Sequence record: OZ195934.1
DNA length: 64,000 nt
Strand: one strand, 5' to 3'
Positions 1-55,458 of the stretch are shown here, piece by piece. Below the pieces are notes generated by a model. That model had not been told where the DNA came from. It saw nothing but the letters and a program-made list of their open reading frames with translations, and did no database searches. A program made the translations under genes and the position numbers. How positions within the stretch are numbered: the stretch's first letter is position 1; every line of letters begins with the position of its first letter.

Positions 1-858
1 AGTGTTGCGCATAGCAGGTGCCATACGACTAGCAATAGTTTGCAAGTCAATTGGGATATCTAATGTACCAAGCGCGATACGAGCAACGTCAGCCACTTCA
101 GGCACACTATGATTCGCAGCGCCTTGCAAGCGTTCACGATATACACCGCGAGTTGCAGGGGTTAGAGCAGGCATCACCATTGGCGTGTTCGGAACACGTT
201 TCGCTGGTTTGTCTTCGATCCATTCAGCTTTCACTTCGTCGTGAAACTCTTCAAATCCCGGTACCATATCAGCCGTAACGATAATCGAGCGTGCAGTCGC
301 GATGTCTGGTTCTTTAGACATTTGAGCAGCTAGAATATTGATAGTCTTTTCTTCAGACTCAAGTAGCTTATCGGTATTGTATCCCGGTTTGTTGATAACG
401 AAGAAGCTGAAATCTTCAGCCATTTCATGATCGCCAACGTTTAGAATCTTAGTTGTTTCACAGCCGTAGCGTAGTTTCTTGAATAGCGTTTTGATACGCA
501 TATCGAACATCTTGCCACTGCCTTTCTTTTGTACGCGCATTGATACAGCGTTTGCACGAACTTTCAGCATGAATTCTTGAACAAGTTTAACCAACGTTTC
601 TTGGAACTTTTGTTGATCACCCATATCACGAATAGTTAATCCGCCTTTTTTACCGCGCATTGCAGTAACAGTACAGAACCAAGCGCGTTTAGTACGGTCG
701 CCTAGCCCCGATTTTGTTTTACTTGTAAACGTGACAACGACATCTTTGGTCTCACCAGCCATATCGATGACAAAGTAACGATTGACTTTGGTCGAGCGAG
801 CCGGGTAGTAGTTATAAGTTGAAGTTGCTGTCTCATTTAATTCTTGAAATCCAATCAT
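1..858 (-). CDS. Alt-like virion-packaged protein, N-terminal part (runs off the window)
   Basis: Open frame from ATG at 858 to the window edge (MIGFQELNE TATSTYNYYPARSTKVNRYFVDM...NAVSMRVQKKGSGK); absent from the ORF track because truncated. Late promoter upstream. Weak resemblance to the T4 Alt N-terminus (from memory); no catalytic ART domain visible. Confidence 0.5.
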   Translation of the reverse strand, partial: MIGFQELNETATSTYNYYPARSTKVNRYFVIDMAGETKDVVVTFTSKTKSGLGDRTKRAWFCTVTAMRGKKGGLTIRDMGDQQKFQETLVKLVQEFMLKVRANAVSMRVQKKGSGKMFDMRIKTLFKKLRYGCETTKILNVGDHEMAEDFSFFVINKPGYNTDKLLESEEKTINILAAQMSKEPDIATARSIIVTADMVPGFEEFHDEVKAEWIEDKPAKRVPNTPMVMPALTPATRGVYRERLQGAANHSVPEVADVARIALGTLDIPIDLQTIASRMAPAMRNT

Positions 859-890
859 TTTTTAGACTCGCCTTATTGAAAATATACCTG

Positions 891-898
891 TATTTATG
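891..898 (-). promoter_or_regulatory. T4-type late promoter (CATAAATA)
   Basis: + strand tatttatg, 33 nt upstream of the ATG at 858. Confidence 0.6.
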
Positions 899-950
899 AG
901 AGTGCATTAACACCCATCTAGAACTATTTAAACTTTTTTTACGAAAGTGG

Positions 951-979
951 TTGCATCGAATTCAAAATACGCCTAATAT
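951..979 (+). promoter_or_regulatory. Early sigma70-type promoter, class A
   Basis: TTGCAT-17-TAATAT, followed by ATCGAAACGAAAC at 986-998. Confidence 0.75.
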
Positions 980-1022
980 CTCTACATCGAAACGAAACAC
1001 ACTAATCACAAGAGAGAAAATT

Positions 1023-1541
1023 ATGACTAAACTTAACGCTCAGACTGCTACTAACGCTCAAATCGCTGAATTCTACGGTATGACTCTTGATCCGTCGGGT
1101 ATGCCTTACGCACTTGACGCGAAATCACGTCGTCATTACATCACTGATTTGCGTTCAAAGTTTCGTAAAGAAGCAGCTAAGAAGACTTCACGCAAAGTAG
1201 CTACTGCGACTCGTAAAATTGAATTACCAAGCGCAGAAGAGCATTTAGCGATGCTGAACACTGATTTCACTGAACATCAATGGTTCATTCGCGAATCTCA
1301 GCCGGGTCTTGATATCTCAGAACTTGGTTTACGCTTCTACTTCATCGGCGGTGCTAACATTCATCAACTGAACATTCGCACAAAACACTTCTCAAACAAA
1401 GAGTTAGAGAATTTCTATGCGAACAAGAAGATTCTGAAAGGTCACAAGGGTACTGGTTCAGTCACAATTGGCTCTCTTTCATACGAAGAAGTTGTTCAAA
1501 TCGCACAAGATATGATTGAAAAGTCAGAAAGTGTGATTTAA
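1023..1541 (+). CDS. Early protein, possible remote MotA-CTD-like DNA-binding protein
   Basis: Real start probably ATG 1023 after GAGAG RBS. Basic linker KKTSRKVATATRK, then an alpha/beta domain; see findings. Confidence 0.8.
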   Translation: MTKLNAQTATNAQIAEFYGMTLDPSGMPYALDAKSRRHYITDLRSKFRKEAAKKTSRKVATATRKIELPSAEEHLAMLNTDFTEHQWFIRESQPGLDISELGLRFYFIGGANIHQLNIRTKHFSNKELENFYANKKILKGHKGTGSVTIGSLSYEEVVQIAQDMIEKSESVI

Positions 1542-1566
1542 GTCACGAAAAAGTAGTGTTCGGGTA

Positions 1567-1595
1567 TTGACAGTAACATCGAAATACCCGATAAT
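1567..1595 (+). promoter_or_regulatory. Early promoter inside an inverted repeat
   Basis: TTGACA-17-GATAAT flanked by TCGGGTATT...AATACCCGA. Confidence 0.65.
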
Positions 1596-1640
1596 AAACA
1601 CATCAAGACGACATAGACAACTACTTAAAGAGAGAACATT

Positions 1641-2624: not shown

Positions 2625-2867
2625 ATGATAACAATCTACACAATTCCTAACTGTGACGGTTGCCGACATGCAATCGCACTCTGTAAGTTCAAGAAAATCC
2701 CTTTCGAAGAAATCTCGCTTGATTCTGAAGCTAAAATAGCTGCACTCCATAAACGTCTCGGTGGTAATCGTAACATTCGAGTACCGTTAGCTGTTGACTC
2801 TGACGACACGTATATCGGTCACTTACCAGAGCTTAAACAGTACGTTGATAGCAAGCTGTATAAATAG
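2625..2867 (+). CDS. Glutaredoxin (NrdC/NrdH-like)
   Basis: 80 aa, IYTIPNCDGC (CxxC), VP motif, YIG. Confidence 0.85.
   Translation: MITIYTIPNCDGCRHAIALCKFKKIPFEEISLDSEAKIAALHKRLGGNRNIRVPLAVDSDDTYIGHLPELKQYVDSKLYK
2859..2866 (+). promoter_or_regulatory. T4 late promoter
   Basis: Exact TATAAATA upstream of gene 24. Confidence 0.85.
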
Positions 2868-2924: not shown

Positions 2925-3824
2925 ATGACTGTATCTATCGGTAACGGTTTACCAGACATTGTTACAGTTCAGAAACGACTATATCCGCTTATCTTTACGG
3001 AAATTGTGTCTGAACAACCAACAAAACAGCCAATCGCGACTGCGTACGGCTTTAAAGCTATCAAAGACACTGACGATTCAAGTGGCTGGGGGCAGTGGAA
3101 ATTCTCGCTTGACCGTTGGTCTGCGACTGCCGAAGCAACAAAGCTAAAAACTGATATCTCTCTTGAAGCTATTCAAGACATGGAAGCACTTGGGCTCGGC
3201 ACTGACTTAATCGTTGACTCACTAGCTGATCAAGCGGCAGATGACATCAACACGAATATCATCACTGCACTGAACGCGATTTCAACACTTGGTACTGCGA
3301 TTGACGTTAGCTCAATCACTGGCAAATTCAACAAAGGCCGTGAGTTGTATGCTCTTGCACACGTCGAAGCTTCTAAACTTGAAAAAGAGTCTGGTTGTCA
3401 GGGTTCGTACATCGTAGCAGGCAGCGAGACATTTGGTCTAATCGTTGGTTCTGGTATGGCAAAACGCATTGGTGAATCGAACGTTTATAAATTAGACTCT
3501 GGTCTTAAACTTGTCCATGACAAGTACGCAACGACTGAATACTTCACAGTTGGCGTTAAGAAAGAAATGTCTGATTTCGAAATCTCAAGTCTGATCTTCA
3601 GTCCGTACAATTTCGATGGCGAAACTGGTGGCGGTATTGCTTATCAGCACGAAGGGCAAGACCCTAAGACATTCAACCCAATCTTTGCGATTATCGCACG
3701 ATACGCACTGACAGTTGCACCGCTTGAATCTGATCAAACGGGCGCTAGTGATATCGATTGGGACGATCTTGGTGACAAGGCTAACAGTTCTAAGCTATCA
3801 GCAACATTTGCCGTAACGCTATAG
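2925..3824 (+). CDS. 24: Capsid vertex protein gp24
   Basis: IFTEIVSEQPTKQPIATAYG, KLKTDISLEAIQD, SLIFSPY, IIARYAL: gp23/gp24 family, 299 aa, late promoter. Confidence 0.8.
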   Translation: MTVSIGNGLPDIVTVQKRLYPLIFTEIVSEQPTKQPIATAYGFKAIKDTDDSSGWGQWKFSLDRWSATAEATKLKTDISLEAIQDMEALGLGTDLIVDSLADQAADDINTNIITALNAISTLGTAIDVSSITGKFNKGRELYALAHVEASKLEKESGCQGSYIVAGSETFGLIVGSGMAKRIGESNVYKLDSGLKLVHDKYATTEYFTVGVKKEMSDFEISSLIFSPYNFDGETGGGIAYQHEGQDPKTFNPIFAIIARYALTVAPLESDQTGASDIDWDDLGDKANSSKLSATFAVTL

Positions 3825-3832
3825 GGTGACAC

Positions 3833-4354
3833 ATGAAAACACATTATGTAGATAATAAAGCTCTATACGCATCGATTTGCGAATGGAAAGAAGAAATGAA
3901 GAACGCTGAAGAAGGCGTTTTCGTGCCAGTCCCTGATTTCGTGGCAATTAGTATCATGAAAATCAGCGAGAACTTGACTCGTCGTTACAACTTTAGCAAT
4001 TACACGCAGCCGTGGAAAGAAGAAATGGTTGGTGATGCGATTGAGCATTGCTTACGCTACGTGAAGAACTTCGACACTGAGCGATTCAAAAACCCACACG
4101 CGTATATCACTCGTATCTGTTTCAATGCATTCGTGCAGCGTATTAAGAAAGAACGCCAAGATACAGCGATTAAATATAAAGTATTCTTGTCAGATTCGTC
4201 AAACTACACCGTTGAGGGTGAAGACGTTGATTTCGACTTCATGCAGCAAATGCTAGAACGCGTGAACTCATTCGACGAATCTCGCAAATCAAACAAATCT
4301 GAATCTGCCCCTAGCAAGAAAGACGATTCGAACTTACAAAAATTTTACGATTAA
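3833..4354 (+). CDS. 55: Late-transcription sigma factor gp55
   Basis: HYVDNKALY, NFSNYT, WKEEMVGDAIE, NPHAYITRICFNAFVQRIKKE. Confidence 0.95.
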   Translation: MKTHYVDNKALYASICEWKEEMKNAEEGVFVPVPDFVAISIMKISENLTRRYNFSNYTQPWKEEMVGDAIEHCLRYVKNFDTERFKNPHAYITRICFNAFVQRIKKERQDTAIKYKVFLSDSSNYTVEGEDVDFDFMQQMLERVNSFDESRKSNKSESAPSKKDDSNLQKFYD

Positions 4355-4363
4355 GGAATTAAC

Positions 4364-5800
4364 ATGTTAGGTACCTTTGACTCATTTCTGAGTGAAAATC
4401 GCCGTCAAACTCAGGGTGGTAAAATCTACCCTAAGTTTGGTCAAGTATTTGTTGAGCTAGGCACAGCTTCTACCGACTTCAGCAAAGAAAAAGGCGTTGA
4501 AACAACTATCGGTATGATGGAAAAAGCGAATGAGCTTAAATCTATCATGCAATCTAAACTATTCGAAGACAGCAACGTTGATCACACTAAATTCGACATG
4601 AATCTAAGTGAAAACGTTTCAGTTATCAACTTGCTAATGGAAGAAGAATTCCTAGCATGTAAGCCGACTGAACTTGCGCAACTAAAGTCGATGACCACTG
4701 TGTCTGAAGCTCGTATGCCAAGTCTTGTCGTGAAAGGCGGTGAACTTACGACTATCGTTAGCGAAGCAACTAAGCTTGGTTACAAAAAGTCTGATATTCA
4801 CGTGATCTTCCCGATGGCTGAAATGAAAATCGAACTTGCTGACAGCGACAAGCTAGTGGTTGAAGCACTATCGTTTGATGGACGTACAGCTACTGAAATT
4901 CTGGCAATGGGTTCTCGCATTCAACTTGGCGACGTTTACGTAGTGAGCGAGTCCGTTGAGTCGAACGCTGACGTGCTAGGTCTTGAAGAGATTCGCATCA
5001 ATCGCATGACGCTTGGCGCTCTTAACCGTCACGTTATGAACTGCTTTGTTGTTAAAGAAGCGGCTGAAACGTCATACGCGCACGCTGCGGTTAAAGAAAT
5101 CACTGATCGCCCTGCGCTATCAGGCTTCAAAGCATACGATTTGAAACCAAACGTGACTATGCTTGAACATGCACAAAACGCATTCTCAAAAGACATTGCT
5201 AAAGCTCCGCTTTCTGCAACTGCATGGGAAAAGCTTGTTGATGTGAAAGAAGTGTATTTCGACAATGGTTGGAAACTGAAGCACAACAACACAAGTCTTG
5301 TTCTAACAAACGCTGAAAACGCTATGCGTCATGGTCGTGTTTGTGAAGAATATCGTGTTGAACTGTCTGAAGCAGGTTATCCGCTTCTTGATATGATCGC
5401 GATGATGGAACGCAACGAAGAAATTCGTTGGGACTGTGCTTCGTTTGCTAAACACATGATGAAATTCGACGGTGCTATCACCCCAGAACGTCAATCTGTG
5501 ACAGCATTTACGACTGAATCATCTTCTAATCGCGTATTCCACCCGCATGTGATGTCTGACCTACGTCCAGTTACTGAAGCGGCAGACGACGTTGACAGCT
5601 TGATTCGTGCTATCGCGAATGATCAGTTCAGTTCATTCAAGATCAGTCAAGCATTCTCTGAGCAGATGCTAGATCAAGAAACGCTTTACTCTATGATGGA
5701 ATCAATCGTTTCTGAAGGTATCGACGTTGACGCTGATGGTGATTTGATTACTTTCAAAGTTAATGCGACTCAGTACCACATTCAACTAGACATTAAGTAG
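4364..5800 (+). CDS. Hypothetical 478-aa protein, likely head-internal; degenerate P-loop-like N-domain
   Basis: Starts MLGTFDSFLSE; several (V/L)xE-A/S sites; see findings. Confidence 0.85.
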   Translation: MLGTFDSFLSENRRQTQGGKIYPKFGQVFVELGTASTDFSKEKGVETTIGMMEKANELKSIMQSKLFEDSNVDHTKFDMNLSENVSVINLLMEEEFLACKPTELAQLKSMTTVSEARMPSLVVKGGELTTIVSEATKLGYKKSDIHVIFPMAEMKIELADSDKLVVEALSFDGRTATEILAMGSRIQLGDVYVVSESVESNADVLGLEEIRINRMTLGALNRHVMNCFVVKEAAETSYAHAAVKEITDRPALSGFKAYDLKPNVTMLEHAQNAFSKDIAKAPLSATAWEKLVDVKEVYFDNGWKLKHNNTSLVLTNAENAMRHGRVCEEYRVELSEAGYPLLDMIAMMERNEEIRWDCASFAKHMMKFDGAITPERQSVTAFTTESSSNRVFHPHVMSDLRPVTEAADDVDSLIRAIANDQFSSFKISQAFSEQMLDQETLYSMMESIVSEGIDVDADGDLITFKVNATQYHIQLDIK

Positions 5801-5806
5801 GGTCAA

Positions 5807-6457
5807 ATGGCTAAATCATTAAACGATTTTCTGACTGAAGTTCAGAAATATAGCTCGGCAGCTACATCTATTCGCGGTAAAGAAGTTGCCGCGTTGGTTA
5901 AACTGTTCAAAGCGGGCATGTTTGTACCGGGTGGCACTGCGCTAGATTACGGTGCGGGTAAGTACGGTCGTAATGCTGAATACTTACGTGGCGAGGGTGT
6001 TCGCACTTACGCATACGACAAGTTCAACGGTACATCGGCAGACGGTTGGGTTGACGTGAGTCTAACAATCCCAGCGGGTCAAATGTTCGATACGTCGTTC
6101 ACGTCGTACGTTCTGAACGTAGTTCCACAAGAAGTCGAAGCTGAAATCATTCGCGAGATTGAATCACTTACGACTGGTAAAGTGTTCCACATTACACGTG
6201 GTTCTGACATCACTCAAACGGTATTCAACGTTATCAGTGGTAAGTCTAAGAACGCAGTGATGATGGAATTCCTTGAAACTGAGCAACCAGATTTGTACGC
6301 TCAAGTTCAAGCAGGTGAAAACTTGAAAGCAGTAGCTAAAGAGATCGCGACTCGCGGTGTCGTTACAGCTAAAGACAGTTTCCAACGCATTCCTGACCTT
6401 TCTCAGTACGGTTACAAACGTTCTGGTTCTGGTGCATCGATGGTGTGGACAAAATAA
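5807..6457 (+). CDS. Class I SAM-dependent methyltransferase
   Basis: ALDYGAGKYGRN (motif I), AYD, FDTSFTSYVLNVV; N-terminus MAKSLNDFLTE. Confidence 0.8.
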   Translation: MAKSLNDFLTEVQKYSSAATSIRGKEVAALVKLFKAGMFVPGGTALDYGAGKYGRNAEYLRGEGVRTYAYDKFNGTSADGWVDVSLTIPAGQMFDTSFTSYVLNVVPQEVEAEIIREIESLTTGKVFHITRGSDITQTVFNVISGKSKNAVMMEFLETEQPDLYAQVQAGENLKAVAKEIATRGVVTAKDSFQRIPDLSQYGYKRSGSGASMVWTK

Positions 6458-6474
6458 TTTCGATTATTTCAATA

Positions 6475-6528
6475 AAAGGGTTGCTTCGGCAACCCTTTTT
6501 GCGTATTATAGCTCTATCGAAACGAAAC
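6475..6528 (+). promoter_or_regulatory. Fused terminator / early promoter cassette (PeSL-like)
   Basis: AAAAGGGTTG-CTTCGG-CAACCCTTTTT hairpin with TTGCTT(6481)-17-TATTAT and ATCGAAACGAAAC. Confidence 0.85.
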
Positions 6529-6532
6529 GACT

Positions 6533-6562
6533 GTTTAATACGTCATCAATCTGTTTTATACT
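6533..6562 (+). promoter_or_regulatory. Class B promoter
   Basis: GTTTAAT-17-TATACT in tandem with the class A promoter. Confidence 0.7.
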
Positions 6563-6588
6563 ATGAATCTACTTGAGAGAACAATATT

Positions 6589-7035
6589 ATGATCTATATT
6601 CAAACTAGCAACATCCTATCTGACGACACTCTTGGCTTTGCGCTTGGTGGTGCCCCTCGTCTCGATACTTTGCCAGAAAAAGAACGCAATAATGTTCTTC
6701 TCAAAGCACTCGAAATCAAACTATATGAACGTCTGCCGTCAACTGCTGTATTCGATCATCTACTTCAAAACTCTATCCCGTTCATCGCGATTCTGAGCGA
6801 TATCGAAGAAATTGCTATGCAGCAATCGATTTGGTTCGAAGCAATTTCGAAGAACAAAGGTATCGATATCATGTACACTGCGATGTCTGACGTTGAACAC
6901 AGCGAAGACACGATGCTAATTGCTGAAGATCGCGACGCTCTAATTCGTCAAGGTCAAGCAGGTGGTCGTATTCTACCATTTAGCACAGAAACGCAGATGC
7001 CATTCATCATCGAGACGCTTAACTTACCTCAATAA
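6589..7035 (+). CDS. Hypothetical protein
   Basis: 148 aa ORF with GAGAG RBS. Confidence 0.8.
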   Translation: MIYIQTSNILSDDTLGFALGGAPRLDTLPEKERNNVLLKALEIKLYERLPSTAVFDHLLQNSIPFIAILSDIEEIAMQQSIWFEAISKNKGIDIMYTAMSDVEHSEDTMLIAEDRDALIRQGQAGGRILPFSTETQMPFIIETLNLPQ

Positions 7036-7044
7036 GGAATCATA

Positions 7045-7419
7045 ATGCAAGAACAGACACCATTAGCTCAAGACACTGACATCGGCGAAGCAGTCGCTGA
7101 CCCTGAAGTTCTTGAGTATCTTGAAAAGCTAAAGCAGCATCGCCAAGAAACTATCGAACGCGAAGCTAATCGTCGCATCAAGAAAAACAAGCGTGAGATT
7201 AAACGTCTGCACAAACACGCTCAGGAATGTCTAATCAATGACAATAAAGACGGTTACATTTATGCTATCGGTAAGCTGCGTAAACTAACTGGTCATGTTG
7301 TCGGTGATGATGTGCTTGAAACTCTATGGCAAACAAGTCGTGAGCAAGTACAAAAGATCGCTGCTTCATTCGCTGAAGCTCAAGCAAACTTGCCTGAAGG
7401 GCAAAATTTCAGTCAATAG
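7045..7419 (+). CDS. a-gt.4: T4 a-gt.4-like conserved protein
   Basis: EANRRIKKNKREIKRLHKHA...YIYAIGKLR. Confidence 0.75.
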   Translation: MQEQTPLAQDTDIGEAVADPEVLEYLEKLKQHRQETIEREANRRIKKNKREIKRLHKHAQECLINDNKDGYIYAIGKLRKLTGHVVGDDVLETLWQTSREQVQKIAASFAEAQANLPEGQNFSQ

Positions 7420-7426
7420 GTGATAC

Positions 7427-7882
7427 ATGAACATCAAGTCAGGCGCTGGTTATCCAGCCAGTGCTTTGTCTAACTTCGCACCTCATTCATTCACACTGGA
7501 TGGGGTTGAATGCGCGTCTATGGAAGGGTTTCTTCAGTCTTTGAAGTTCAAAAACCCTGATATGCAACGTGAAGTCTGCAAATTAGTAGGCAAAGTTGCT
7601 AAAGCACGCGGTGCAAAGAAGAACTGGCAACGCACTCAAACTCTATATTGGCAAGGTGTGCCGATTCAACGTGCTTCTGATGGCTATCAGACGTTGCTTG
7701 ATGATGCATACGCTGCATTAGCTCAGAACGAGAAATTCAAGCGTGCATTACTCGCGACTGGTAAAGCTACTCTTACTCACTCTATCGGGCGTAAGAAGCA
7801 ATCTGAGACGGTTCTAACGGTACAAGAGTTCTGTAGTCGTCTAACTGACATTCGCGACTTTCTTCAAGGGGTAGAATCATGA
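7427..7882 (+). CDS. 30.3: NADAR-family ADP-ribosylhydrolase (T4 gp30.3-like)
   Basis: YPASALSNFAPHSF, SMEGFLQSLKF, FKRALLATG, LTHSIG. Confidence 0.85.
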   Translation: MNIKSGAGYPASALSNFAPHSFTLDGVECASMEGFLQSLKFKNPDMQREVCKLVGKVAKARGAKKNWQRTQTLYWQGVPIQRASDGYQTLLDDAYAALAQNEKFKRALLATGKATLTHSIGRKKQSETVLTVQEFCSRLTDIRDFLQGVES

Positions 7883-8385
7883 GAATGACAAATCTTCGAT
7901 TAGCCTTGAATTCAGTGTTTAAATCGCGTAAAGAAAAGCCTATTCTATATCTCGACATGGACAATGTACTCGTTGATTTTCAGAGTGGTATTGATTCTCT
8001 CTCAATGTGGGAAAAGCATCAATATGATGGCAAATACGACGAATGTCCGGGAATCTTCGCGAACATGAAACCGTATGCAGGTGCTGTTGCAGCGTTTCTA
8101 GCACTGTCTGATCACTTTGACGTGTATATTCTGTCAACTGCTCCGTGGGAAAACCCGGGTGCATGGCAAGATAAGCGCAATTGGGTTCAGCGTTATCTAG
8201 GTGAACGCGCTCATAAGCGTTTGATTCTGTCGCATAACAAAAATCTGAACTTCGGTCATTATCTCGTCGATGATCGCACCGCGAATGGTGCAGGCGAGTT
8301 CATGGGCGAACATATTCACTTTGGCACTGACAAATACCCTGATTGGTCGTCTGTTGTGTCATATCTTTTGAAGGAAATAGAATGA
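7879..8385 (+). CDS. 5'(3')-deoxyribonucleotidase (HAD)
   Basis: LYLDMDNVLVDF, ILSTAPW, LVDDR. Confidence 0.9.
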   Translation: MRMTNLRLALNSVFKSRKEKPILYLDMDNVLVDFQSGIDSLSMWEKHQYDGKYDECPGIFANMKPYAGAVAAFLALSDHFDVYILSTAPWENPGAWQDKRNWVQRYLGERAHKRLILSHNKNLNFGHYLVDDRTANGAGEFMGEHIHFGTDKYPDWSSVVSYLLKEIE

Positions 8386-9422
8386 AAGTAGCACTTTTAG
8401 GCGATTTGCATATCGGGGTGCGCGATGATGACTTGTGGATTCAAGATTATCAACGTAAATTCTTTGACTTTATGTTTGCTGAACTTGAGCATCGCGGTGT
8501 TAAAGATCTCGTCCAACTAGGTGACTGGTTTGACGTGCGTCGTGGCGCGACTCAAGAAACATTGATGTTTCAACGAACGTATCTTAACGACATGTTAGCA
8601 GGCATCAATACGCACGTACTTGTTGGTAACCATGACATGCACTTACGTGAGCGCATCGTACCGAACACGCCATACGAAGTATTGAGCATCGTTCCTGACG
8701 TTACGATTTACGAACACCCGCGAACCGTTGTGTTTGGTGATGTTGCAATCGACATTATCCCGTGGATTTGTAAAGAGAATGAAGCTGAAATCGCTGAGTT
8801 CATCGAGAACACGACAAGCGAATACTGCGTTGGTCACTTTGAGCTGAACGGCTTTGAGTTCCACAAGGGTCAGAAAGCAACGGGCTGTCTTGATTCGAGC
8901 TTCTTGAAAGGTTACAAGCAAGTTTGGTCTGGTCACTTTCACACGCAATCTGAAGCGGGTAATATCAAGTATCTTGGTACACCGTACACGCTGACGCTTG
9001 CAGATGCTGATGATAAGCGCGGATTCTTCTTGTTTGACACAGAAACGCACGAAATGGAGTTCATTGAGAACCCAGATTGTTGGCACACTAAGCTGTACTA
9101 CGACGCGAACACGTTCGACACGAAGACGATTGACAGCTACGCGAACAAGAACGTTAAGATCATCGTTGAACGTCGCTCTAGTGACTCACGTGACTTGTCG
9201 TTTGATGTAGTCGAAGATCGTATCGCGAACATTGCTCATGCTTGTGACACGCTCGATGAGCTTGAAATCAAGAAAGACATGGCAGAAGACTTCAAAGACA
9301 TCAAAGATATCGACGATTATGTTGGCGATTACGCTGACACGCTTGAAGAATCGACTGAAGTCAAGAACAAGGTCAAGGCGATCTTTAGTTCTCTGCGTGC
9401 TGAAGCGATGGAGAATGCTTGA
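8382..9422 (+). CDS. 47: Recombination endonuclease subunit gp47 (Mre11-like)
   Basis: GDLHIG, QLGDWFD, GNHD, GHFE, SGHFH, GTPY; true start ATG 8382. Confidence 0.95.
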   Translation: MKVALLGDLHIGVRDDDLWIQDYQRKFFDFMFAELEHRGVKDLVQLGDWFDVRRGATQETLMFQRTYLNDMLAGINTHVLVGNHDMHLRERIVPNTPYEVLSIVPDVTIYEHPRTVVFGDVAIDIIPWICKENEAEIAEFIENTTSEYCVGHFELNGFEFHKGQKATGCLDSSFLKGYKQVWSGHFHTQSEAGNIKYLGTPYTLTLADADDKRGFFLFDTETHEMEFIENPDCWHTKLYYDANTFDTKTIDSYANKNVKIIVERRSSDSRDLSFDVVEDRIANIAHACDTLDELEIKKDMAEDFKDIKDIDDYVGDYADTLEESTEVKNKVKAIFSSLRAEAMENA

Positions 9423-9649
9423 TGTCTGACTTAAAACCATGTAAAGTATGTGGCTGCAAGCCGTATGTGCATGAGACGAATATCCATGCACATGGCACAG
9501 CATTTCGCGGGTGGGTTGTTGAGTGTACTTTTGACGAAGAAGACTATCGCAATCCACCAAAAGTACCGCCGTATGTCGACCATACGTTGGAGATTTACGG
9601 TGCGACTCAAGAAGAAGCAACCGAACGTTGGGAGCAGCTAAATGATTAA
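9422..9649 (+). CDS. Small Cys-motif hypothetical (Lar-like LKPCxxCG start)
   Basis: MSDLKPCKVCGCKP; ATG overlaps the gp47 stop. Confidence 0.7.
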   Translation: MSDLKPCKVCGCKPYVHETNIHAHGTAFRGWVVECTFDEEDYRNPPKVPPYVDHTLEIYGATQEEATERWEQLND

Positions 9650-11879
9650 ATTCAAAAGCGTCACTTACAGCAACATTATGTCAGTCGGTAATACGCCGAT
9701 TACAGTTGAGTTGGACAAGTTCAACAAGACACTGATCACTGGTACTAATGGTGCGGGTAAATCGACGTACATCGAAGCAGTTTGTTTTGCGTTATACGGC
9801 AAGCCGTTTCGTAACATCAAAAAGACTCAGATTGTCAATGCAGTCAACAAGAAAAAGCTTCTTGTTGAGATTGAGTTTCAAGATAAAAAGCACTTGTACA
9901 AAATCGTGCGTGGCATCAAGCCGAACAAATTCGAAATCTACAAAGATGGCGATTTGATTCCGCAAGAAGCTGCGGTCGCTGATTACCAAGATATGCTTGA
10001 AAAGAACATCTTGCAGATGAGTTTGAGCACATTCAAACAAATCGCTGTGCTAGGTACGGCTGGTTTCACGCCATTCATGCTTTTACCCGCTGCGAAGCGT
10101 CGTGAAATCGTGGAAGACTTGCTTGATATCGGTATCTTCAGTGACATGGCATCGTTGAACAAAGTCGCGTTGAAAGACTTGAACACGAAGATCACTGACA
10201 TCGAAGCAGATATCGAACGTCGCATGGGCGAACTTCGTCTACACGTCGAATTCCAGAAAGAGCAGAAAGACAATCGCGATGGTGATTTGGCTCAACTGGT
10301 TAGTCGTAAAGCTGAAGCTGAGACGCAAATTGCTCCACTAGCGTCTGCTATGTCTCATCTTGAAGACCAGATCAGCGGTGATAGCACGATTCTTCGTGAC
10401 TTGAAAACCAAGCTTGCTGAAGCTCTTGAAACTGCGAGTGCAGAACAAGCGAAAGAACTGTCCGAACTTGATGCTGAACATCGTTCGAATAAGGCTGAGA
10501 TCCATGCGGGCTTTGAAAAAGAAGTGTCTGAGCTGAAAGCCAAGCATACGTCTGAGCAAGATGCAACTGATGCACTACACGAATCTGACTTACTTGAGTT
10601 TGACCGTGTTCAAGCGGAAGCATTGTCTACATTTGACGGTGAAACTGAAAAGAACACACCAGAAGACGCAGACACTGATCAGATTGCGGCTGACACATCA
10701 ATGATGTTCAGCAACAAAAAAGAGATCGATCAGCTCAAGACGAACAAAAAATTCTTCGAAGAGAACGGTGACTGCGAGTGTTCAACTTGTAAGCAAACAA
10801 TCTCGTCTGATTTCGCTCAGAATGTCATCGACATGGCAGATCAGCGCATTGAAACGCTGACAGCCGAGACGAAAGCACTTGTAGACGCGATTCGCACCGC
10901 TCAAGACAAAGCTAAAGCACGTAAAGCGTACTTAACGGATCGTTCGACTGAACGTTCGGGTTTAGAAGCAACGCAGCGTACAGAGCGTTCTACGTTCGTT
11001 AACGAACAGTCAACTGAACGTCAGACAATCGCACGTAAGCAGCAAGAAGAAATGAACACCTTTGTTGGTGATGTGCAGAACCCTGCAATTCGTCTTCTGA
11101 ATGAGACACAATCGAAAGCGCGTGCTGACATTGTAGCTCAACATGCTGAGTTCAACGCGAATATCACTAAAGGTGATGCGTCTGCGCGTGAAGAACTGAC
11201 CGCGAACATCGGTAAAGACAAAGCTGAACTTGCTACTATTGTCGCAAAAGAAGAGGCTTTGAACAAAGCAATTGCTACTATTGTCGCAGATATTGCAGAT
11301 GTTGAGGCGAAAGCAGCAACTGAAGACCGTTCTGAGCTTATCAAAGAGCAAACGTCTGAGATTAAGCGTGTTAAAGCGGGTCTAGCTGTAGATCTTCAGA
11401 CTAAACACTGTCGCGGTATCGTGGCAACGTTGTTGAAAGACGATGGCGTGAAGTCGATGATTGTTAAACAGTACATCCCGATGATTAACAAGTACATCAA
11501 CGAATACTTGAAGACTATGAACGCGAACTACAACTTCGTTCTAGACGAAGAGTTCAACGAGACTATCAAATCTCGTGGTCGTGATGACTTCAGTTACACG
11601 TCGTTTTCTCAAGGTGAGCGATGCCGTATTGACTTAGCGTTACTATTCGCGTTCCGTGACTTGGTAAGCGCACGTACGGGTTCAATGACCAACTTGCTTG
11701 TACTCGATGAGGTGTTCGATTCTGCTGCTGATACAGATGGCGTAGATTCAATTAACCAGATTCTTAGCACAATCAAAGACAACGTGTTTATTATCTCACA
11801 CAGTGAGAAGCATGAGCAAAGCATGTTCGATAAGCACATTCGATTCACCAAGAAAGGCAACTTCACTAAGGAAGTCTAA
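9642..11879 (+). CDS. 46: Recombination endonuclease subunit gp46 (Rad50-like)
   Basis: GTNGAGKS, CSTC hook, FSQGE signature, LLVLDEVFD. Confidence 0.95.
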   Translation: MIKFKSVTYSNIMSVGNTPITVELDKFNKTLITGTNGAGKSTYIEAVCFALYGKPFRNIKKTQIVNAVNKKKLLVEIEFQDKKHLYKIVRGIKPNKFEIYKDGDLIPQEAAVADYQDMLEKNILQMSLSTFKQIAVLGTAGFTPFMLLPAAKRREIVEDLLDIGIFSDMASLNKVALKDLNTKITDIEADIERRMGELRLHVEFQKEQKDNRDGDLAQLVSRKAEAETQIAPLASAMSHLEDQISGDSTILRDLKTKLAEALETASAEQAKELSELDAEHRSNKAEIHAGFEKEVSELKAKHTSEQDATDALHESDLLEFDRVQAEALSTFDGETEKNTPEDADTDQIAADTSMMFSNKKEIDQLKTNKKFFEENGDCECSTCKQTISSDFAQNVIDMADQRIETLTAETKALVDAIRTAQDKAKARKAYLTDRSTERSGLEATQRTERSTFVNEQSTERQTIARKQQEEMNTFVGDVQNPAIRLLNETQSKARADIVAQHAEFNANITKGDASAREELTANIGKDKAELATIVAKEEALNKAIATIVADIADVEAKAATEDRSELIKEQTSEIKRVKAGLAVDLQTKHCRGIVATLLKDDGVKSMIVKQYIPMINKYINEYLKTMNANYNFVLDEEFNETIKSRGRDDFSYTSFSQGERCRIDLALLFAFRDLVSARTGSMTNLLVLDEVFDSAADTDGVDSINQILSTIKDNVFIISHSEKHEQSMFDKHIRFTKKGNFTKEV

Positions 11880-15332: not shown

Positions 15333-15860
15333 ATGAACAACGAACGTTTTCAAGAACTATTACAATTCGGTGGCGAATTCGAAGCTGCCGTAGAGCCGAA
15401 GATCGCGAGGGTATTCTGTCATGCAGACCCGATGGCGATGCTTATCAATACGGCTACATCAAAAACAGATGACAAGCATGGGCGTGGTCAACGTCTGATG
15501 TTCTGTCAAGACACATCCGCAAGCTATATGCTACCAGACGTATTTGTTTTCAGTAAAGGAAAGCAGTTCTGCGTCGAAATCAAGTGTAAAAATCGATTCT
15601 TCCGACATAGTGACGGTAAATTGTATGCTGTCATTGACACATATAAGATCAAAGACTACGAAGAAGCGGTTGAGAAGATGAACTTTGACGGCATTTACTA
15701 CGTATTTGGTGATAAGCAGACTCGTTCTGTCTATTTTGCCACTCCCGAACAAGCCAAAGAGATCGTCATTCGACTGGACTCGTTTGTCAGCAAGAAAAAT
15801 CCGAAAGGTCAGTTTCATGCATGGGCAATCGACGAATTACATTCTCTAGGGAAATGGTAG
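15333..15860 (+). CDS. PD-(D/E)XK nuclease-fold protein
   Basis: MLPDVFVF...VEIKCK catalytic motif. Confidence 0.75.
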   Translation: MNNERFQELLQFGGEFEAAVEPKIARVFCHADPMAMLINTATSKTDDKHGRGQRLMFCQDTSASYMLPDVFVFSKGKQFCVEIKCKNRFFRHSDGKLYAVIDTYKIKDYEEAVEKMNFDGIYYVFGDKQTRSVYFATPEQAKEIVIRLDSFVSKKNPKGQFHAWAIDELHSLGKW

Positions 15861-15889
15861 TTTAACAGCTAAACAACGCGTGATAGCAT
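15860..15889 (+). promoter_or_regulatory. Class B promoter for gene 43
   Basis: GTTTAAC-17-TAGCAT. Confidence 0.65.
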
Positions 15890-15919
15890 ACATACATCAA
15901 ACACTTGTGAAGGAATAAT

Positions 15920-18469: not shown

Positions 18470-18746
18470 TGTAGACGGCATCGCGTTTGACGAAGACACG
18501 CGAATCATAGACATCGAGGACGGGGCTTTGCCCGTCTTCGTGACCGAAACACCGGTAACGCAAATCAACGAATACAAAGTATGCAACGATTGGGTGTTAG
18601 ATATCGAGTCGTGGCATGTAGGCGATGAAGTTGTGAAGATTACGCTTGGTAATAAAAAGGCAACGTACATGGGAATCGAGCATCCCGCGAATGTTCTCAT
18701 CGACAAAGCGCAACTGAAATCATTCTTGCAAGATTTGTTGAAATAA
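18462..18746 (+). CDS. Hypothetical protein (TTG start)
   Basis: 94 aa, GGAG upstream, overlaps the gene 43 stop. Confidence 0.65.
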
Positions 18747-18749
18747 CGA

Positions 18750-18780
18750 TTGACAGTGTATAGTTTCGGCTATACACTGT
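18750..18780 (+). promoter_or_regulatory. Promoter inside an 11-bp perfect inverted repeat
   Basis: TTGACA-17-TACACT; ACAGTGTATAG-TTTCGG-CTATACACTGT. Confidence 0.8.
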
Positions 18781-18807
18781 TATTAACTTAATTGAGAGGA
18801 TAAAATC

Positions 18808-24473: not shown

Positions 24474-24504
24474 ACAGAATGACACACAACAAAATGGTAA
24501 ACTA

Positions 24505-42534: not shown

Positions 42535-43515
42535 CTATTGTGACTGCTCTTCTGCAAGCCTCGCTTGATAATCAGCTTTCGATTCTGCTTCAATCATGCT
42601 GTAGCCATTCAAACCCTCTGCACAATAACGTCTAAACGTCTCATGATTCAGACCCGCACCGTCAGACTTCGCACACGCTTGTACCGTTCCTGTGTGTTCT
42701 CTACCGTCAGGCGAGACATAACGACGAGGTCGTTTAGTGTTTTCAAGTGTCCACTTACCATCAATCTTGAGAATGTCACCTGAACGCAATCGCGATAAGT
42801 GACTCGGGAAAAGCCCAAGTTCGATTGCCTGTTGATTCTGATTTGTAATCACTACCGTTTCATTAGTCTCAGTGTTCAGAATCGTGTACGGCTTCACTAC
42901 TCGATGCGCTTGACCTCTACGATGCGCTTCGCGTCGTTCTTCTGTCCATTCTGCCGGAGAGCGACCAATCTCCCAGCCACTGTCTAGATATTCTTGCACA
43001 TCGTCAGGCGCAACATATTTGGTTCGTTGCCCGAGTTTATACATCACTTGATGGTCGACTGTGTGTTCGTTGTGAATGAAGTTGCTCTCCATTTCAAATC
43101 TGACCGCGTCTGACACATCTTCCCAACACGCGGCAGTGAAGTTACCACCACACTGTTTGTTCAGATACACGTCACTGCGAACAGCATCAAGTTCGATTTG
43201 AAGCATCGCTTCAGCAAACAACGTCTTGCCCCATGAATCATGACAAGACACGATTCGAAACTCATCAATCACAATACCCTGTGCGTGCATTTCATTAACG
43301 TGCTTTGAACTACTAGTGTACGATCTCCAATTAGACTCGCGAAACGGCTTCTTTGGTAGCTTCTTGTATGATGCAGGCGTTCTCTTCATAGACACCCATA
43401 TTTTCTTAGCACCTATATACTTTTTACCGTTACTCATTGTCAGTACATAGACAAAGCCTAGATATTGTTTAGGGTCGATTTCAAATTCACATACCCAATG
43501 ACCATATTCAAACAT
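42535..43515 (-). mobile_element. Free-standing GIY-YIG homing endonuclease (Seg-like)
   Basis: GFVYVLT...KKYIGAKK; NUMOD-like repeats (YLDSGWEIGRS, WTEERREAH); own late promoter; opposite strand to neighbours. Confidence 0.85.
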
Positions 43516-43545
43516 TTTCTTTCTCTTGTGTTATTTGTGTAATAG

Positions 43546-43553
43546 TATTTATA
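43546..43553 (-). promoter_or_regulatory. T4 late promoter
   Basis: Exact TATAAATA on the minus strand. Confidence 0.85.
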
Positions 43554-44899: not shown

Positions 44900-45088
44900 T
44901 TGAAAAAGCGTCATATATTTCTATTGACGTGCGTGTGTGGAGCAATAGCATACTTCGCTGTGCTATTCTTCGCGGCATTATTGTACGCAGGTACAATAGA
45001 ATTTGCATTATCATTCGTGGTAATCGTATTCATCGCCTTGCTAAATATAGTAAGAGCTGAAATACAAAATAACGACAAAGCTCCGTAA
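44900..45088 (+). CDS. Small two-TM membrane protein (TTG start)
   Basis: KKRH then two hydrophobic segments; AAGGGG upstream. Confidence 0.6.
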   Translation: MKKRHIFLLTCVCGAIAYFAVLFFAALLYAGTIEFALSFVVIVFIALLNIVRAEIQNNDKAP

Positions 45089-45100
45089 GGGGCTTTTTTT
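45078..45100 (+). terminator. Rho-independent terminator
   Basis: AAAGCTCC-GTAA-GGGGCTTT + T. Confidence 0.8.
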
Positions 45101-45114: not shown

Positions 45115-45708
45115 ATGAAAAAATTCAACGAGTTCGCGAAAGAACTGGAAGAAGCAGCAACTGACATCGTGTATCACGGTACGTCACTGAGTCGAGCTAT
45201 TGAAATATTGTCTACTGACAAGTTCAGATTGAGTGATGCTAAAGGCAGTTGGTCAGATGACACAGACACTGAGATCAACCAGAAGCAAGGCAAAGACAAG
45301 CGATACTACTTGTCAACTGCACGTAGTGCAACTAGCCCGTACATCAATGACCTAGACACGATGATTGACTCGACCACGGCTGACGTTCTCTTTGTCATTG
45401 ATGGTCGCAAGATTAGCCACAACCACAGAACGAAAGCAGTTGACTACGGTCGCGGTGAATATGCATCGGACTATGGTAATGAGCTTGAAGATCGCGTGTT
45501 CAGCAAAAAGCCAGTGATTGATAATGCCTCTAAGTACATCAAAGAAGCACACGTATGGAAGAAATTCTCTAGCAGTTCGTCACACGGCGAGTCGATACTA
45601 GAGAAGTTCCTATCTCAAGCAAAGAGAAAAGGGATTCGCGTGTGGGTGTATGATAATCAACGCGATTGGCAGTCTATGAACAAGAAAAGGGCTGTCTTCA
45701 CTCAATAA
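45115..45708 (+). CDS. Putative ADP-ribosyltransferase-fold protein with capsid-targeting-like N-terminus
   Basis: MKKFNEFAKELEEA; VYHGTS; YLSTARS; NELEDRV. Confidence 0.6.
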   Translation: MKKFNEFAKELEEAATDIVYHGTSLSRAIEILSTDKFRLSDAKGSWSDDTDTEINQKQGKDKRYYLSTARSATSPYINDLDTMIDSTTADVLFVIDGRKISHNHRTKAVDYGRGEYASDYGNELEDRVFSKKPVIDNASKYIKEAHVWKKFSSSSSHGESILEKFLSQAKRKGIRVWVYDNQRDWQSMNKKRAVFTQ

Positions 45709-52917: not shown

Positions 52918-52918
52918 G

Positions 52919-53479
52919 CTATTTCTTTTTAGCTGCAAGCGTTTTAGCACGCTTAGTTGCTGTTGATATAGCTTTTAGTTCTTTTTCCATCTTGGCTAAG
53001 TCGCTGACAAACTTCTCTGAGTTCTTGATGTCGCTACGCAGTGCGCCTTTCGATGTCGCGATGTCTAAATCGCTATTCAAGCTCGTACGGAGCTTGTGAG
53101 TCAAGAATGTCGCACGCTCGATGTCTTGCTCGAACTTAGCTACTTTCTTCGGCGTCACTTCAGTGTCTTTGCTTACCGATTGGTACTTTTCAATGCGCTT
53201 CATTAGCTTTTTCAGCTCTTTGTAGTCTTTACGTGCTTGACCGCCTGCGAACAACGCACCACCAATCAAACCATTGATGCCCATACTAATTGCGCCCCAC
53301 GTTGCCAATGGAATTGCAAGAGCAAGACCGCCAGTAGCTGCACCTGCACCTGCTGCACCAAGAGCACCAATTGTTGCACCTGCAACTGCACCGGTAGCTG
53401 CTGCTCGTTTAGCCCATTGGCTGATTGTTGCCTCATCGAGTGGTTTTACTTCGAACTCGTCGAATGTTTTTAATTCCAT
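52919..53479 (-). CDS. Glycine-zipper membrane protein with capsid-targeting-like N-terminus
   Basis: MELKTFDEF...LDEA; GAVAGATIGALGAAGAGAATGG...GLIGG; basic helical C-terminus. Confidence 0.85.
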   Translation of the reverse strand: MELKTFDEFEVKPLDEATISQWAKRAAATGAVAGATIGALGAAGAGAATGGLALAIPLATWGAISMGINGLIGGALFAGGQARKDYKELKKLMKRIEKYQSVSKDTEVTPKKVAKFEQDIERATFLTHKLRTSLNSDLDIATSKGALRSDIKNSEKFVSDLAKMEKELKAISTATKRAKTLAAKKK

Positions 53480-53566: not shown

Positions 53567-53582
53567 AAACTGTGTTATATTA

Positions 53583-53589
53583 TATTTAG
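53583..53589 (-). promoter_or_regulatory. Late promoter variant (CTAAATA)
   Basis: + strand tatttag, about 17 nt upstream of the structured leader. Confidence 0.55.
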
Positions 53590-53642
53590 TGACAACTATT
53601 AATAAGAATGTCGTTTATAGCTCATTTAACTGAAAATAGTTG

Positions 53643-53671
53643 TTGATTAAAGTGTAAAAATGACGTACTAT
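53643..53671 (+). promoter_or_regulatory. Early promoter
   Basis: TTGATT-17-TACTAT. Confidence 0.65.
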
Positions 53672-53710
53672 GACGTAAATCAATATGAACTGCTTAAAAA
53701 GGACACAATC

Positions 53711-54139
53711 ATGACATCTACATCAATTATGCGCGGCGCTAACACAGTTGTACGTGAGCTACAAATCTTCTCTGGTGACACATCAACTGTTGTAATTGGT
53801 GCGCCTGCGAGTGGCAAGAATGCAATGCTGCTTGGTATGTTAGCTCAACGCGGTGCTGAGAACTGCACATTTATCTGTACAGAAATGTATGCGCGTAAAG
53901 CCATCAACATGCTACCGCCAAAAGGTTTAGCTGTTCAATCAAATGCATCATTTGAGTCAATTGTCGGTGCTGTGTCGCGTGCGACTGCAAGCGAACGCGA
54001 GTTCATTGTCATTGAACATTTACCATCCAACCCACAGTTCGACGCTGTTGACGTACTAGAGTCAATCGTTCGAGCACATAATAAAAAACTAATCATCGGC
54101 ATGCAAGCAGCACGCGATGGTATCACACGAGATCTATAA
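53711..54139 (+). CDS. Minimal, degenerate DnaB/RecA-like ATPase domain
   Basis: VIGAPASGKN, FICTEM, FIVIEHL, IGMQAARDG; start ATG 53711. Confidence 0.6.
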   Translation: MTSTSIMRGANTVVRELQIFSGDTSTVVIGAPASGKNAMLLGMLAQRGAENCTFICTEMYARKAINMLPPKGLAVQSNASFESIVGAVSRATASEREFIVIEHLPSNPQFDAVDVLESIVRAHNKKLIIGMQAARDGITRDL

Positions 54140-54140
54140 C

Positions 54141-55172
54141 ATGAATCAAGAACAAGTATTGTTTAAGAGTCTGTTCGGCTCTAGACTATATGGCACAGAC
54201 ACGCCAGAGTCAGACACTGACTACAAAGAAGTCTACATGCCATCCGTAAAACGATTGCTTCGCGGGTTGGCTATCAAAAACAGTGCAGAATCAACGGGCG
54301 ACGACTTCAGCACGAATGGCGCTGATGATGAAGACTACGAACGCATCCCTGTTCAAGTGTTCACTCGCGACTATCTAGCAGGTCAATCGTATGCATATGA
54401 GCTTGCTCACTACGCATTGCACGATGGCGTTGAAGTTGACCCAGCATTCCGTAAGCTATGTGCTGAACTTGTTGTGCGTTACTCTACTAGCAATGTGAAA
54501 GCAATGACTGGTTATGCAATGAGCCAAGCGCAGAAGTATGGCGTAAAAGGCACTCGACTGAACAGCATCATGCTATTTCAGAACGCGTTGCTGTATCATC
54601 ACACTGACGATAAGATGAAACTCGGTGACTGTCTTGAGCTATGTGAAGAGCTGTGGGCACTTGCTGCGAAAGACGAGAACATCGGTTTCGAATGGTATCG
54701 CGGTCCCACATCACGCACACCAGAGCAAGTGAAAGATCCTGCGTTCACTGTGTTAGGCAAAGTCAACGGTCTTGAAGTTACATTCGAAGAAGCGTTGCTG
54801 CGATGTGAGAAGCAAGCAGCCAAGTATGGTGCACGAGCTTATGCAGCACGAGCAGCGTCTGGCTCTGACTGGAAAGCTATCTCTCATGCTCTACGTGTGA
54901 TCGACCAAGCTATCGATATCTTGAACGGTAAGATGCTTGAGTTCCCACGCCCGTTAGCGTCGTTCTATCGCGATGTGAAAGCGGGTAAGTACAAATGGGA
55001 GTATGTGTCGAGCGTAATCACAGAACGATTAGAGACGCTTGCAGAAGCGCAAGAACGTACTGAATTGCAATCACACTCGCCGCAACTCGTTGAATCGTTC
55101 TATGAATGGCACGACGACTGGTTAGATGAGTTGTACTTTCCGTCAATTGAAAGCTTCAGCGACTTAGTATAA
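54141..55172 (+). CDS. Pol-beta-superfamily nucleotidyltransferase (RlaP / T4 nrdC.11-like)
   Basis: FGSRLYGTDTPESDTDY, YMSQAQKYG-like segment, DWKAISHALR. Confidence 0.85.
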   Translation: MNQEQVLFKSLFGSRLYGTDTPESDTDYKEVYMPSVKRLLRGLAIKNSAESTGDDFSTNGADDEDYERIPVQVFTRDYLAGQSYAYELAHYALHDGVEVDPAFRKLCAELVVRYSTSNVKAMTGYAMSQAQKYGVKGTRLNSIMLFQNALLYHHTDDKMKLGDCLELCEELWALAAKDENIGFEWYRGPTSRTPEQVKDPAFTVLGKVNGLEVTFEEALLRCEKQAAKYGARAYAARAASGSDWKAISHALRVIDQAIDILNGKMLEFPRPLASFYRDVKAGKYKWEYVSSVITERLETLAEAQERTELQSHSPQLVESFYEWHDDWLDELYFPSIESFSDLV

Positions 55173-55175
55173 ATA
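55168..55175 (+). promoter_or_regulatory. T4 late promoter
   Basis: Exact TATAAATA. Confidence 0.85.
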
Positions 55176-55203
55176 CAGTTAAACGAACAATGGAGTTTAA
55201 CAC

Positions 55204-55458
55204 ATGACAAAAGGTTTCAATGAATTTCACGCGAAAGGTGAAGTTAAGATTCAAGAGACTACACAAGAGTTCCACGAACGTGTAGTCAAGCACCGTAAAG
55301 TAGATGATGCACGCTACCCTGACCTATCTAAATCTGGTCTTGAGGGTCCGTACACAGACTTGAATGGTAAGGTATACTACTACGATTCTCGTGAGGGTAT
55401 GCATTACGATCCAGATACTGATCTCTACATTACAGCAAAAGACTTACGTTTACCGTAA
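55204..55458 (+). CDS. Small late protein with capsid-targeting-like N-terminus
   Basis: MTKGFNEF...IQE; GLEGPY...YYYDSREGMHYDPDTD. Confidence 0.8.
   Translation: MTKGFNEFHAKGEVKIQETTQEFHERVVKHRKVDDARYPDLSKSGLEGPYTDLNGKVYYYDSREGMHYDPDTDLYITAKDLRLP

Follow-up and report, generated by a model that had tools for sequence, protein, structure and literature searches.

Injected phage proteins act ahead of any phage gene expression. In T4, Alt is packaged, cut at ITE-6 and LTE-619, and ejected (PMC5694885), and at least 10 leader-bearing internal proteins have been reported in the T-even phages, with Ip1, Ip2, and Ip3 all blocking GmrSD enzymes (PMC12373910). T4 propeptides are 10–19 amino acids (aa) long, with targeting residues at positions 4 and 7 and processing residues at positions 8 and 10, and the leader has been suggested to let T4-like phages load varied proteins (PMC9026906). 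Here we describe nine genes whose products begin with a similar leader in a 64,000-nt stretch of DNA (the window), which is 100% identical, with zero differences, to bases 62001–126000 of Vibrio phage D483 (OZ195934.1, 253.9 kb). D483 falls in the Schizotequatrovirus or KVP40 group of T4-related giant vibriophages, and an 11-kb megablast search returned 18 near-identical Vibrio phages from oysters and seawater. Coordinates are those of the window unless preceded by "record", which refers to D483 OZ195934.1.

We propose, with a probability of about 0.78, that the products of the nine genes reside inside the head of a KVP40-type T4 relative and that each has an N-terminal capsid-targeting propeptide of the T4 kind. 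Transcription would proceed from gp55-type late promoters alongside the head genes, the propeptide would dock each protein on the gp22/gp67/gp68 scaffolding core during prohead formation, and the gp21-type prohead protease would cut after the hydrophobic-x-Glu motif, thereby freeing the mature protein within the shell. The protein would then remain in the packed head and leave along with the DNA when a cell is infected, as T4 Alt and Ip1–3 do; docking, the exact cut, the location inside the head, and ejection are all extrapolated from these T4 proteins. The predicted cargo comprises an Alt ADP-ribosyltransferase, a methyltransferase-like protein, Alt-N/DUF6934 paralogues, an HExxH protein, an acidic 64-kDa protein, and small proteins, and by the same analogy it would serve in host takeover or anti-defence.

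The D483 set resembles T4 Ip1, Ip2, and Ip3 (Mullaney and Black; PMC9026906, PMC3012670) in its short leader, which has a hydrophobic or aromatic residue at each of positions 4 and 7 and closes with hydrophobic-x-Glu, in the unrelatedness of the cargoes and their presence in particles, and in the scattering of the putatively late genes through early regions, several of them on the opposite strand; small Lys-rich members also lie beside the tRNA cluster (record 210157–210381 and 214707–214955). It differs in number, with at least 16 tagged, particle-detected proteins as opposed to three Ips and Alt, and also in kind, as many members are large (20–64 kDa) and some are enzyme-like or very acidic, whereas the T4 Ips are small and basic. 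Most D483 members are core genes of the clade, in contrast to the hypervariable T4 Ips, and there is a second, shorter tag type (MII[FI]E). The T4 targets, GmrSD enzymes acting on glucosyl-hydroxymethylcytosine (glucosyl-hmC) DNA, are unlikely to be relevant to these phages, since what they have is a 7-deazaguanine pathway. The D483 Alt homologue (PHROG 802, PF03496) is like T4 Alt in having a late box, in being abundant in particles, and in adjoining the DNA ligase gene, but its leader differs, it is 564 rather than 682 aa long, and D483 adds four stand-alone Alt-N-like DUF6934 paralogues.

Head-loaded enzymes, including ADP-ribosyltransferases (ARTs), Nudix proteins, and others, are also delivered with the DNA by MuF-fused or polyvalent proteins (Iyer et al., PMC9503650), by P1 DarA, DarB, and Hdf (PMC12810830), and by the phiKZ and SPN3US ejection proteins (PMC5694885), and in these systems, as predicted for D483, a protease cuts after Glu in a short motif. 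Those carriers depend on fusion to a structural domain or on a propeptide of more than 100 residues, whereas the D483 address is a leader of ~10 residues on separate small genes.

An earlier note on this DNA had suggested a possible undescribed first-strike system. The route appears rather to be the known one by which T4 loads its internal proteins and Alt, with many more and larger cargoes. What is notable is how many, how large, and how diverse the cargoes are, together with the second short tag type and the connection of DUF6934 to the Alt N-terminus. We found no description of a leader-bearing internal-protein set in KVP40-type phages in the literature searched, which did not cover the KVP40 genome paper; the abstract of that paper reportedly gives 33 T4-like late promoters, in line with the 34 gene-preceding boxes counted below in D483, and does not mention internal proteins.

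Leaders and late-promoter boxes

The nine N-termini that the earlier note had quoted are all present at the positions and on the strands it gave, and they coincide with annotated D483 coding sequence starts. The genes encode the N-terminal 286 codons of an Alt-like ADP-ribosyltransferase (1–858, minus strand; MIGFQELNE), a 478-aa protein of the KVP40.0065 family (4364–5800, plus strand; MLGTFDSFLSE), a 216-aa methyltransferase-like protein of the KVP40.0066 family (5807–6457, plus strand; MAKSLNDFLTE), a 562-aa very acidic protein (24505–26193, plus strand; MKLKLFENFYQE, then RLDE), a 351-aa protein with HELQH and HEINAR motifs (28487–29542, minus strand; MIIIE), a 288-aa DUF6934 (Alt-N-terminal-like) protein (33514–34380, plus strand; MKFSEYQTELNE, then AFDRP), a 197-aa protein (45115–45708, plus strand; MKKFNEFAKELEE, which begins MKKFNEF), a 186-aa protein (52919–53479, minus strand; MELKTFDEF..PLDE), and an 84-aa protein (55204–55458, plus strand; MTKGFNEF..KIQE). 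Genes other than alt are referred to below by the coordinate of their start. The claim that three of the four minus-strand genes belong to the set holds for the four minus-strand genes longer than 100 aa.

A hydrophobic or aromatic pair spaced i, i+3 and beginning at residue 2–6 is found in all 14 of the tags listed, and each of the nine candidates has a hydrophobic-x-Glu site within 5–18 residues of its start, which is kept in orthologues. The same kind of site is found at the start of D483 gp21, gp22, gp23, and gp68; the gp21 protease starts MELLIE followed by TWG, resembling T4 gp21, and gp68 starts MKFITE. When the T4 genome (AF158101) is read directly, ipII and ipIII start MKTYQEFIAE and ipI starts MKTFKEF, and a near-copy of the ipII/ipIII start (MKTLQEFLAE) opens a D483 gene at record 214707–214955 (minus strand). 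A further start, MKTLAEFLGE, is encoded from an internal Met at record 213758–214012 (minus strand), and both genes lie in a tRNA cluster adjoining homologues of 57A, gene 1, and gene 3, which is the location of ipI in T4. The description of these leaders as similar to T4 capsid-targeting sequences is thus borne out, both by the shared architecture and by the near-identity of one D483 gene start to those of ipII and ipIII. The annotated starts at record 213758–214012 (minus strand) and 190348–191463 (plus strand) are probably too far upstream; at the latter the internal Met gives MKKLNTFMEE and places a late box 31 nt upstream. The second tag type (MII[FI]E) is found in 29542, the weakest member of the set, and in the gene beside alt, and is retained in relatives.

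Comparison with the syntenic regions of PC-Liy1, ValKK3, and vB_VspM_VS2, in which protein identity is 46–87%, shows that it is the tag residues that turn over, the pattern being kept, as is the mature sequence that follows the Glu. The orthologues of 5807, for example, have four different leaders followed by 20-odd identical residues, and in ValKK3 the leaders of 5807 and 24505 are replaced by MKQFGEFLTE and MKQFNEFYQE, respectively. The cargoes belong to different PHROGs, so that one tag is carried by otherwise unrelated proteins, and where 4364 and 45115 resemble proteins of other phages, the homology begins only past the leader.

A genome-wide motif search of the kind the earlier note had called for finds the leader enriched at D483 protein starts, with extra tagged genes outside the window. 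The complete D483 record was scanned at the N-termini of 428 called genes; some called starts are off (e.g. record 18396–18881), and annotated starts take precedence where the two differ. The pattern fitted to the nine genes matches 10 of the 428 N-termini, compared with 0.8 expected from internal windows. As this pattern is post hoc, a second one was built solely on what has been published for T4 (residues 4 and 7 for targeting, 8 and 10 for processing) with a register shift of up to 4 allowed, and this matches 10 D483 proteins against at most 1.9 expected; on a 100-kb T4 stretch it picks up ipII and ipIII. Because a tag-like start could arise from AT-rich codon usage at the beginnings of genes, residues 2–24 were shuffled within each protein, and none of 1000 trials attained the observed count under any of the three motif definitions. 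Motif and late box are associated (Fisher p ~0.004). A looser pattern of an aromatic pair plus LxE is unspecific alone, in T4 also matching lysozyme, terminase, and others.

The window has exactly eight late-promoter-like boxes (TATAAATA, CATAAATA, or CTAAATA), four on each strand, and these include all six that the earlier note had quoted (at 891, 2859, 24467, 29574, 53583, and 55168). Six of the eight are 30–100 nt upstream of candidates. The box CATAAATA (891–898, minus strand) is 40 nt upstream of alt, CTAAATAA (24467–24474, plus strand) is 38 nt upstream of 24505, and CTAAATAC (29573–29580, minus strand) is 38 nt upstream of 29542; all three are kept in the three relatives. The box CTAAATAT occurs 74 nt upstream of 45115 (45041–45048, plus strand) and ~100 nt upstream of 53479 (53582–53589, minus strand), and TATAAATA occurs 36 nt upstream of 55204 (55168–55175, plus strand), where it is kept in two of the three relatives. 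A terminator-like hairpin with a T run (45077–45096) lies between the 45041 box and the 45115 start codon. A further TATAAATA box (2859–2866, plus strand) is upstream of the gp24-like vertex gene (2925–3824) and may also drive gp55, 4364, and 5807, which follow on that strand; no plus-strand terminator-like site was found from 2925 to 6457. The statement that most of the genes lie behind a late promoter therefore stands for the six with a box of their own, and could extend to 4364 and 5807 through the gp24 box.

Throughout the D483 genome, 34 of 47 boxes are within 100 nt upstream of a correctly oriented gene, and the genes so preceded include sheath, tube, gp22, gp23, fibres, and fibritin, a placement which indicates that the box acts like a real late promoter. 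Judged by their boxes, the candidate genes look late. The window's only late box without a link to a head or tagged protein is a perfect TATAAATA box 38 nt upstream of a homing endonuclease gene (42535–43553, minus strand).

Particle proteins

Particles of the near-identical phage 6E351A have been analyzed by tandem mass spectrometry, with 94 proteins reported from two replicates (PMC12028318, ISME J 2025, Table S4), and we used the Table S8 coordinates to map the 6E351A locus tags to D483 genes. Eight of the nine candidates are detected, with spectral counts (replicate 1/replicate 2, here and throughout) of 122/233 for Alt, 58/109 for 24505, 37/51 for 33514, 31/79 for 5807, 18/25 for 29542, 12/17 for 45115, 7/21 for 53479, and 6/13 for 55204. 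The genome-wide background of detection is 21% (hypergeometric p = 2.4e-5), and within the window the comparison is between eight of nine and 16 of 117 (p = 1.6e-7). The study lists these particle proteins as hypothetical proteins, and its text does not discuss targeting or injection, with the terms internal protein, injected, packaged, and late promoter absent from it (PMC12028318).

The genes for the head machinery (portal, gp67-like, gp68-like, gp21 protease, gp22, and gp23; record 4456–9815) have products that are all detected in the 6E351A particles. At least eight further motif-predicted proteins from beyond the window are also in the proteome, bringing the total to at least 16. These are at record 60274–61134 (16/61), 16704–17300 (21/34), 18396–18881 (17/14), ~135002–135712 (15/23), 190348–191463 (plus strand; 18/4), 210157–210381 (14/15), 213758–214012 (minus strand; 12/13), and 214707–214955 (minus strand; 6/10).

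The gp24-like vertex protein is also plentiful in particles (90/145). At 299 aa it is short, and its gene lies well away from the head module, immediately upstream of gp55, the late sigma factor gene. Two small predicted membrane proteins (57231–57542 and 32049–32291) are present in the proteome as well (27/20 and 10/5, respectively), together with spanins and a lipoprotein, and their detection points to membrane carry-over in that preparation.

Cargoes and the DUF6934 family

The alt gene continues past the left end of the window (record 61164–62858, 564 aa). PHROG 802 matches both halves of the protein, and the C-terminal half, outside the window, matches Pfam ADPrib_exo_Tox (PF03496) at 27.4 bits (cutoff 23.4), so that the label of ART-fold protein given in the earlier note is supported by both. 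Alt is alone among the cargoes in passing Pfam, which was run at default and relaxed thresholds; HEAT, Methyltransf_23, PBECR3, and PARP matches are all below cutoff. The PHROG annotation places all of the cargoes in the "unknown function" category, and PDB sequence searches with single proteins and family profiles gave no significant match.

The 33514 protein matches DUF6934 (PF22028) as a single sequence at 17.1 bits, below the cutoff of 27. Its family profile has 1158 representatives, and as those sampled bear DUF6934, with E-values down to 8e-48, we assign the protein to this family. There are four DUF6934 paralogues in D483 (window 33514–34380; record 15727–16704, 60274–61134, and ~135002–135712), all in the particle proteome, with the last of these matching DUF6934 at 32.5 bits. 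In relatives, 33514 has two or three tandem paralogues plus one beside alt, and all keep hydrophobic-x-Glu followed by AF(D/S)R; in the D483 copy beside alt the leader is cut down to MIIFE, immediately before AFSRP. These paralogues recall T4 alt.-1 and alt.-2, which are annotated as duplicating the first part of alt.

An AlphaFold model of 33514 (pLDDT 92.9) matches the N-terminal regions of Alt proteins of T4-like phages in a Foldseek search of BFVD (E 5e-5 to 1e-3), and the family profile aligns weakly with the D483 Alt N-terminus (hhalign, E 0.0013). No fold match to the model was found in the PDB at E ≤0.001, and resemblances to GNAT-like proteins and RNase E were too weak to be used. The conserved start of DUF6934 (hydrophobic-x-Glu, then x-F-D-x-P) has the form of the T4 Alt cut mapped by experiment, where ITE-6 is followed by LFD. 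Many of the 1158 representatives are tandem repeats or giant multidomain proteins with GNAT. Some relatives have 2–6 tandem DUF6934 repeats in proteins of 300–1500 aa, and metagenomic tandem proteins also carry GNAT, deaminase, ParB-like, or zeta-toxin-like domains. In the seven tandem proteins compared, each internal repeat opens with hydrophobic-x-Glu and then [ASLV][FL][DN]xP, the same junction as at the T4 Alt cut. One possibility is that these tandem proteins are polyproteins cut by a prohead protease; another is that the junction is simply a feature of the domain.

Compared with Methyltransf_23 (PF13489; cutoff 27), the 5807 sequence reaches 12.8 bits, and about 20 of 58 homologues carry a precomputed PF13489 match; through these relatives the methyltransferase label is upheld as methyltransferase-like. 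Many metagenomic members of the family have a 9–10-residue leader built in the same way and placed directly ahead of the conserved core, while four other relatives begin at the core and are untagged. Among the contigs of these relatives (one of each), the tagged version is in a T4-like contig and the untagged one is beside BrxL and ParB-like genes.

The tag of 4364 is kept in relatives. The N-terminal 200 aa of this protein are related to P-loop proteins of Klebsiella/RB43-type T4-like phages, with the Walker A motif lost in D483. The homologue in Klebsiella phage Roth23 has an intact Walker A motif and its own, different tag-like leader (MKSFKQFTE..LTE), and the D483 protein has an additional C-terminal part of 270 aa compared with the Klebsiella homologue. 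A label of "anti-RM protein dam3" on the Klebsiella-phage homologue is of untraced source and is not relied on.

The remaining labels in the earlier note are less secure. The HELQH and HEINAR motifs of 29542, which underlie its label as a putative Zn peptidase, are invariant in an alignment of 21 homologues, and Nudix-fused relatives exist. No Pfam match and no PDB sequence-profile match was found, and the model (pLDDT 85.5) has no PDB fold match at E ≤0.001. The proposed HEAT-repeat protein, 24505, has a faint, sub-threshold HEAT/armadillo match. This protein has 133 Asp plus Glu against 46 Lys plus Arg, the opposite of the basic T4 internal proteins. The naming of 53479 as a glycine-zipper membrane protein reflects its composition, a Gly/Ala-rich hydrophobic stretch followed by a Lys-rich tail. 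Given the hydrophobic segment, it is possible that its particle signal stems from membrane debris. The description of the cargo as enzyme-rich holds for two proteins and perhaps for three or four.

A likeness of 45115 to staphylococcal nuclease (thermonuclease) is weak (E 0.01) and comes from one protein in many mutant PDB entries. Homologues of 45115 are present, often in several copies per genome, in unrelated large myoviruses, namely Salicola SCTP-2, Alishewanella, Pseudomonas Lu11, Dickeya JA11/JA13, Microcystis Mel-JY01, and Rhizobium phages.

Alternative explanations and implications

Several observations weigh against a set of head-internal proteins. The 4364 protein is absent from the 6E351A particle proteome despite its well-kept tag, so that the expectation that the proteins would be found in virions is borne out for the other eight, and 33514 has no late box of its own. 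The 6E351A preparation was precipitated with polyethylene glycol (PEG), not gradient-purified, and holds SSB, dUTPase, ligase, spanins, and membrane proteins (PMC12028318); the counts per length of 29542, 45115, and 53479 (0.06–0.075) are near those of contaminants (0.04–0.09). Table S4 gives counts per protein, a level at which no new N-terminus after the Glu is seen. The hydrophobic-x-Glu site also opens internal DUF6934 repeats, and there it may be a feature of the domain. Most candidates, moreover, belong to the core gene set shared by all 18 sequenced relatives (Table S8, PMC12028318). The ip loci of T-even phages, by contrast, turn over fast, and such conservation suits a part in morphogenesis no less than an arsenal.

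This conservation is one of the points in favor of the main alternative, in which the candidates, like gp67 and gp68, are additional proteins of the scaffolding core or of head morphogenesis, serving the larger prolate KVP40-type head, with a core-docking propeptide and no role in the infected cell. It is also favored by the similar starts of the gp68-like protein and gp21, and by a recognisable enzyme domain being missing from most candidates; what determines KVP40 head size is not known (review PMC3012670). We nonetheless regard it as unlikely, since the candidates persist in mature particles above the counts of gp22 and gp68, both of which are largely degraded, since the set has Alt (an ejected enzyme in T4), a methyltransferase-like protein, and a faint PARP-like match, and since the number of paralogues differs among relatives.

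Table S4 gives protein-level counts for whole particles, without location, and untagged hypothetical proteins are plentiful in them too (e.g. 0014 at 414/637), and the candidates could on these grounds be outer virion parts, such as decoration, neck, tail, or fibre accessories, with N-termini that merely look like tags. None of the nine is homologous to a known T4 tail or decoration protein, however, and the tag behaves as a modular add-on, missing in some homologues, and ends in a protease site common to gp21, gp22, and gp23; with Alt, a member of the set, being head-internal in T4, this explanation is very improbable. Least probable of all, and barely credible, is an artefact in which a preference for AT-rich codons where genes begin (Lys, Phe, Asn, Glu) combines with contamination of a crude preparation by abundant late proteins. 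The tag residues do have AT-rich codons and non-structural proteins are demonstrably in the preparation, but shuffles that keep composition never attain the observed counts, detection of eight of nine is far from the background, the pattern survives residue turnover across relatives, and untagged homologues exist. Loading of tagged internal proteins into the head thus remains our preferred explanation.

In the literature searched, leader-based discovery of internal proteins has so far been confined to the T-even coliphages. Here, a leader read from sequence alone picked proteins that were later matched in an independent proteome of a marine, broad-host-range vibriophage, and leader plus late box is a usable predictor beyond Tequatrovirus. 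A broader interpretation, which we put forward tentatively and think rather doubtful as a whole, is that Schizotequatroviruses load a far richer tagged set than T4 (~16 or more), that the DUF6934/Alt-N-like domain is a general capsid-delivery carrier, that tandem DUF6934 proteins are polyproteins from which the prohead protease releases many effectors for injection, and that the arsenal adds to the unusually broad host range of the group. The outcome is a ranked shortlist of proteins that may have first-strike functions, from phages that are studied for their generalism.

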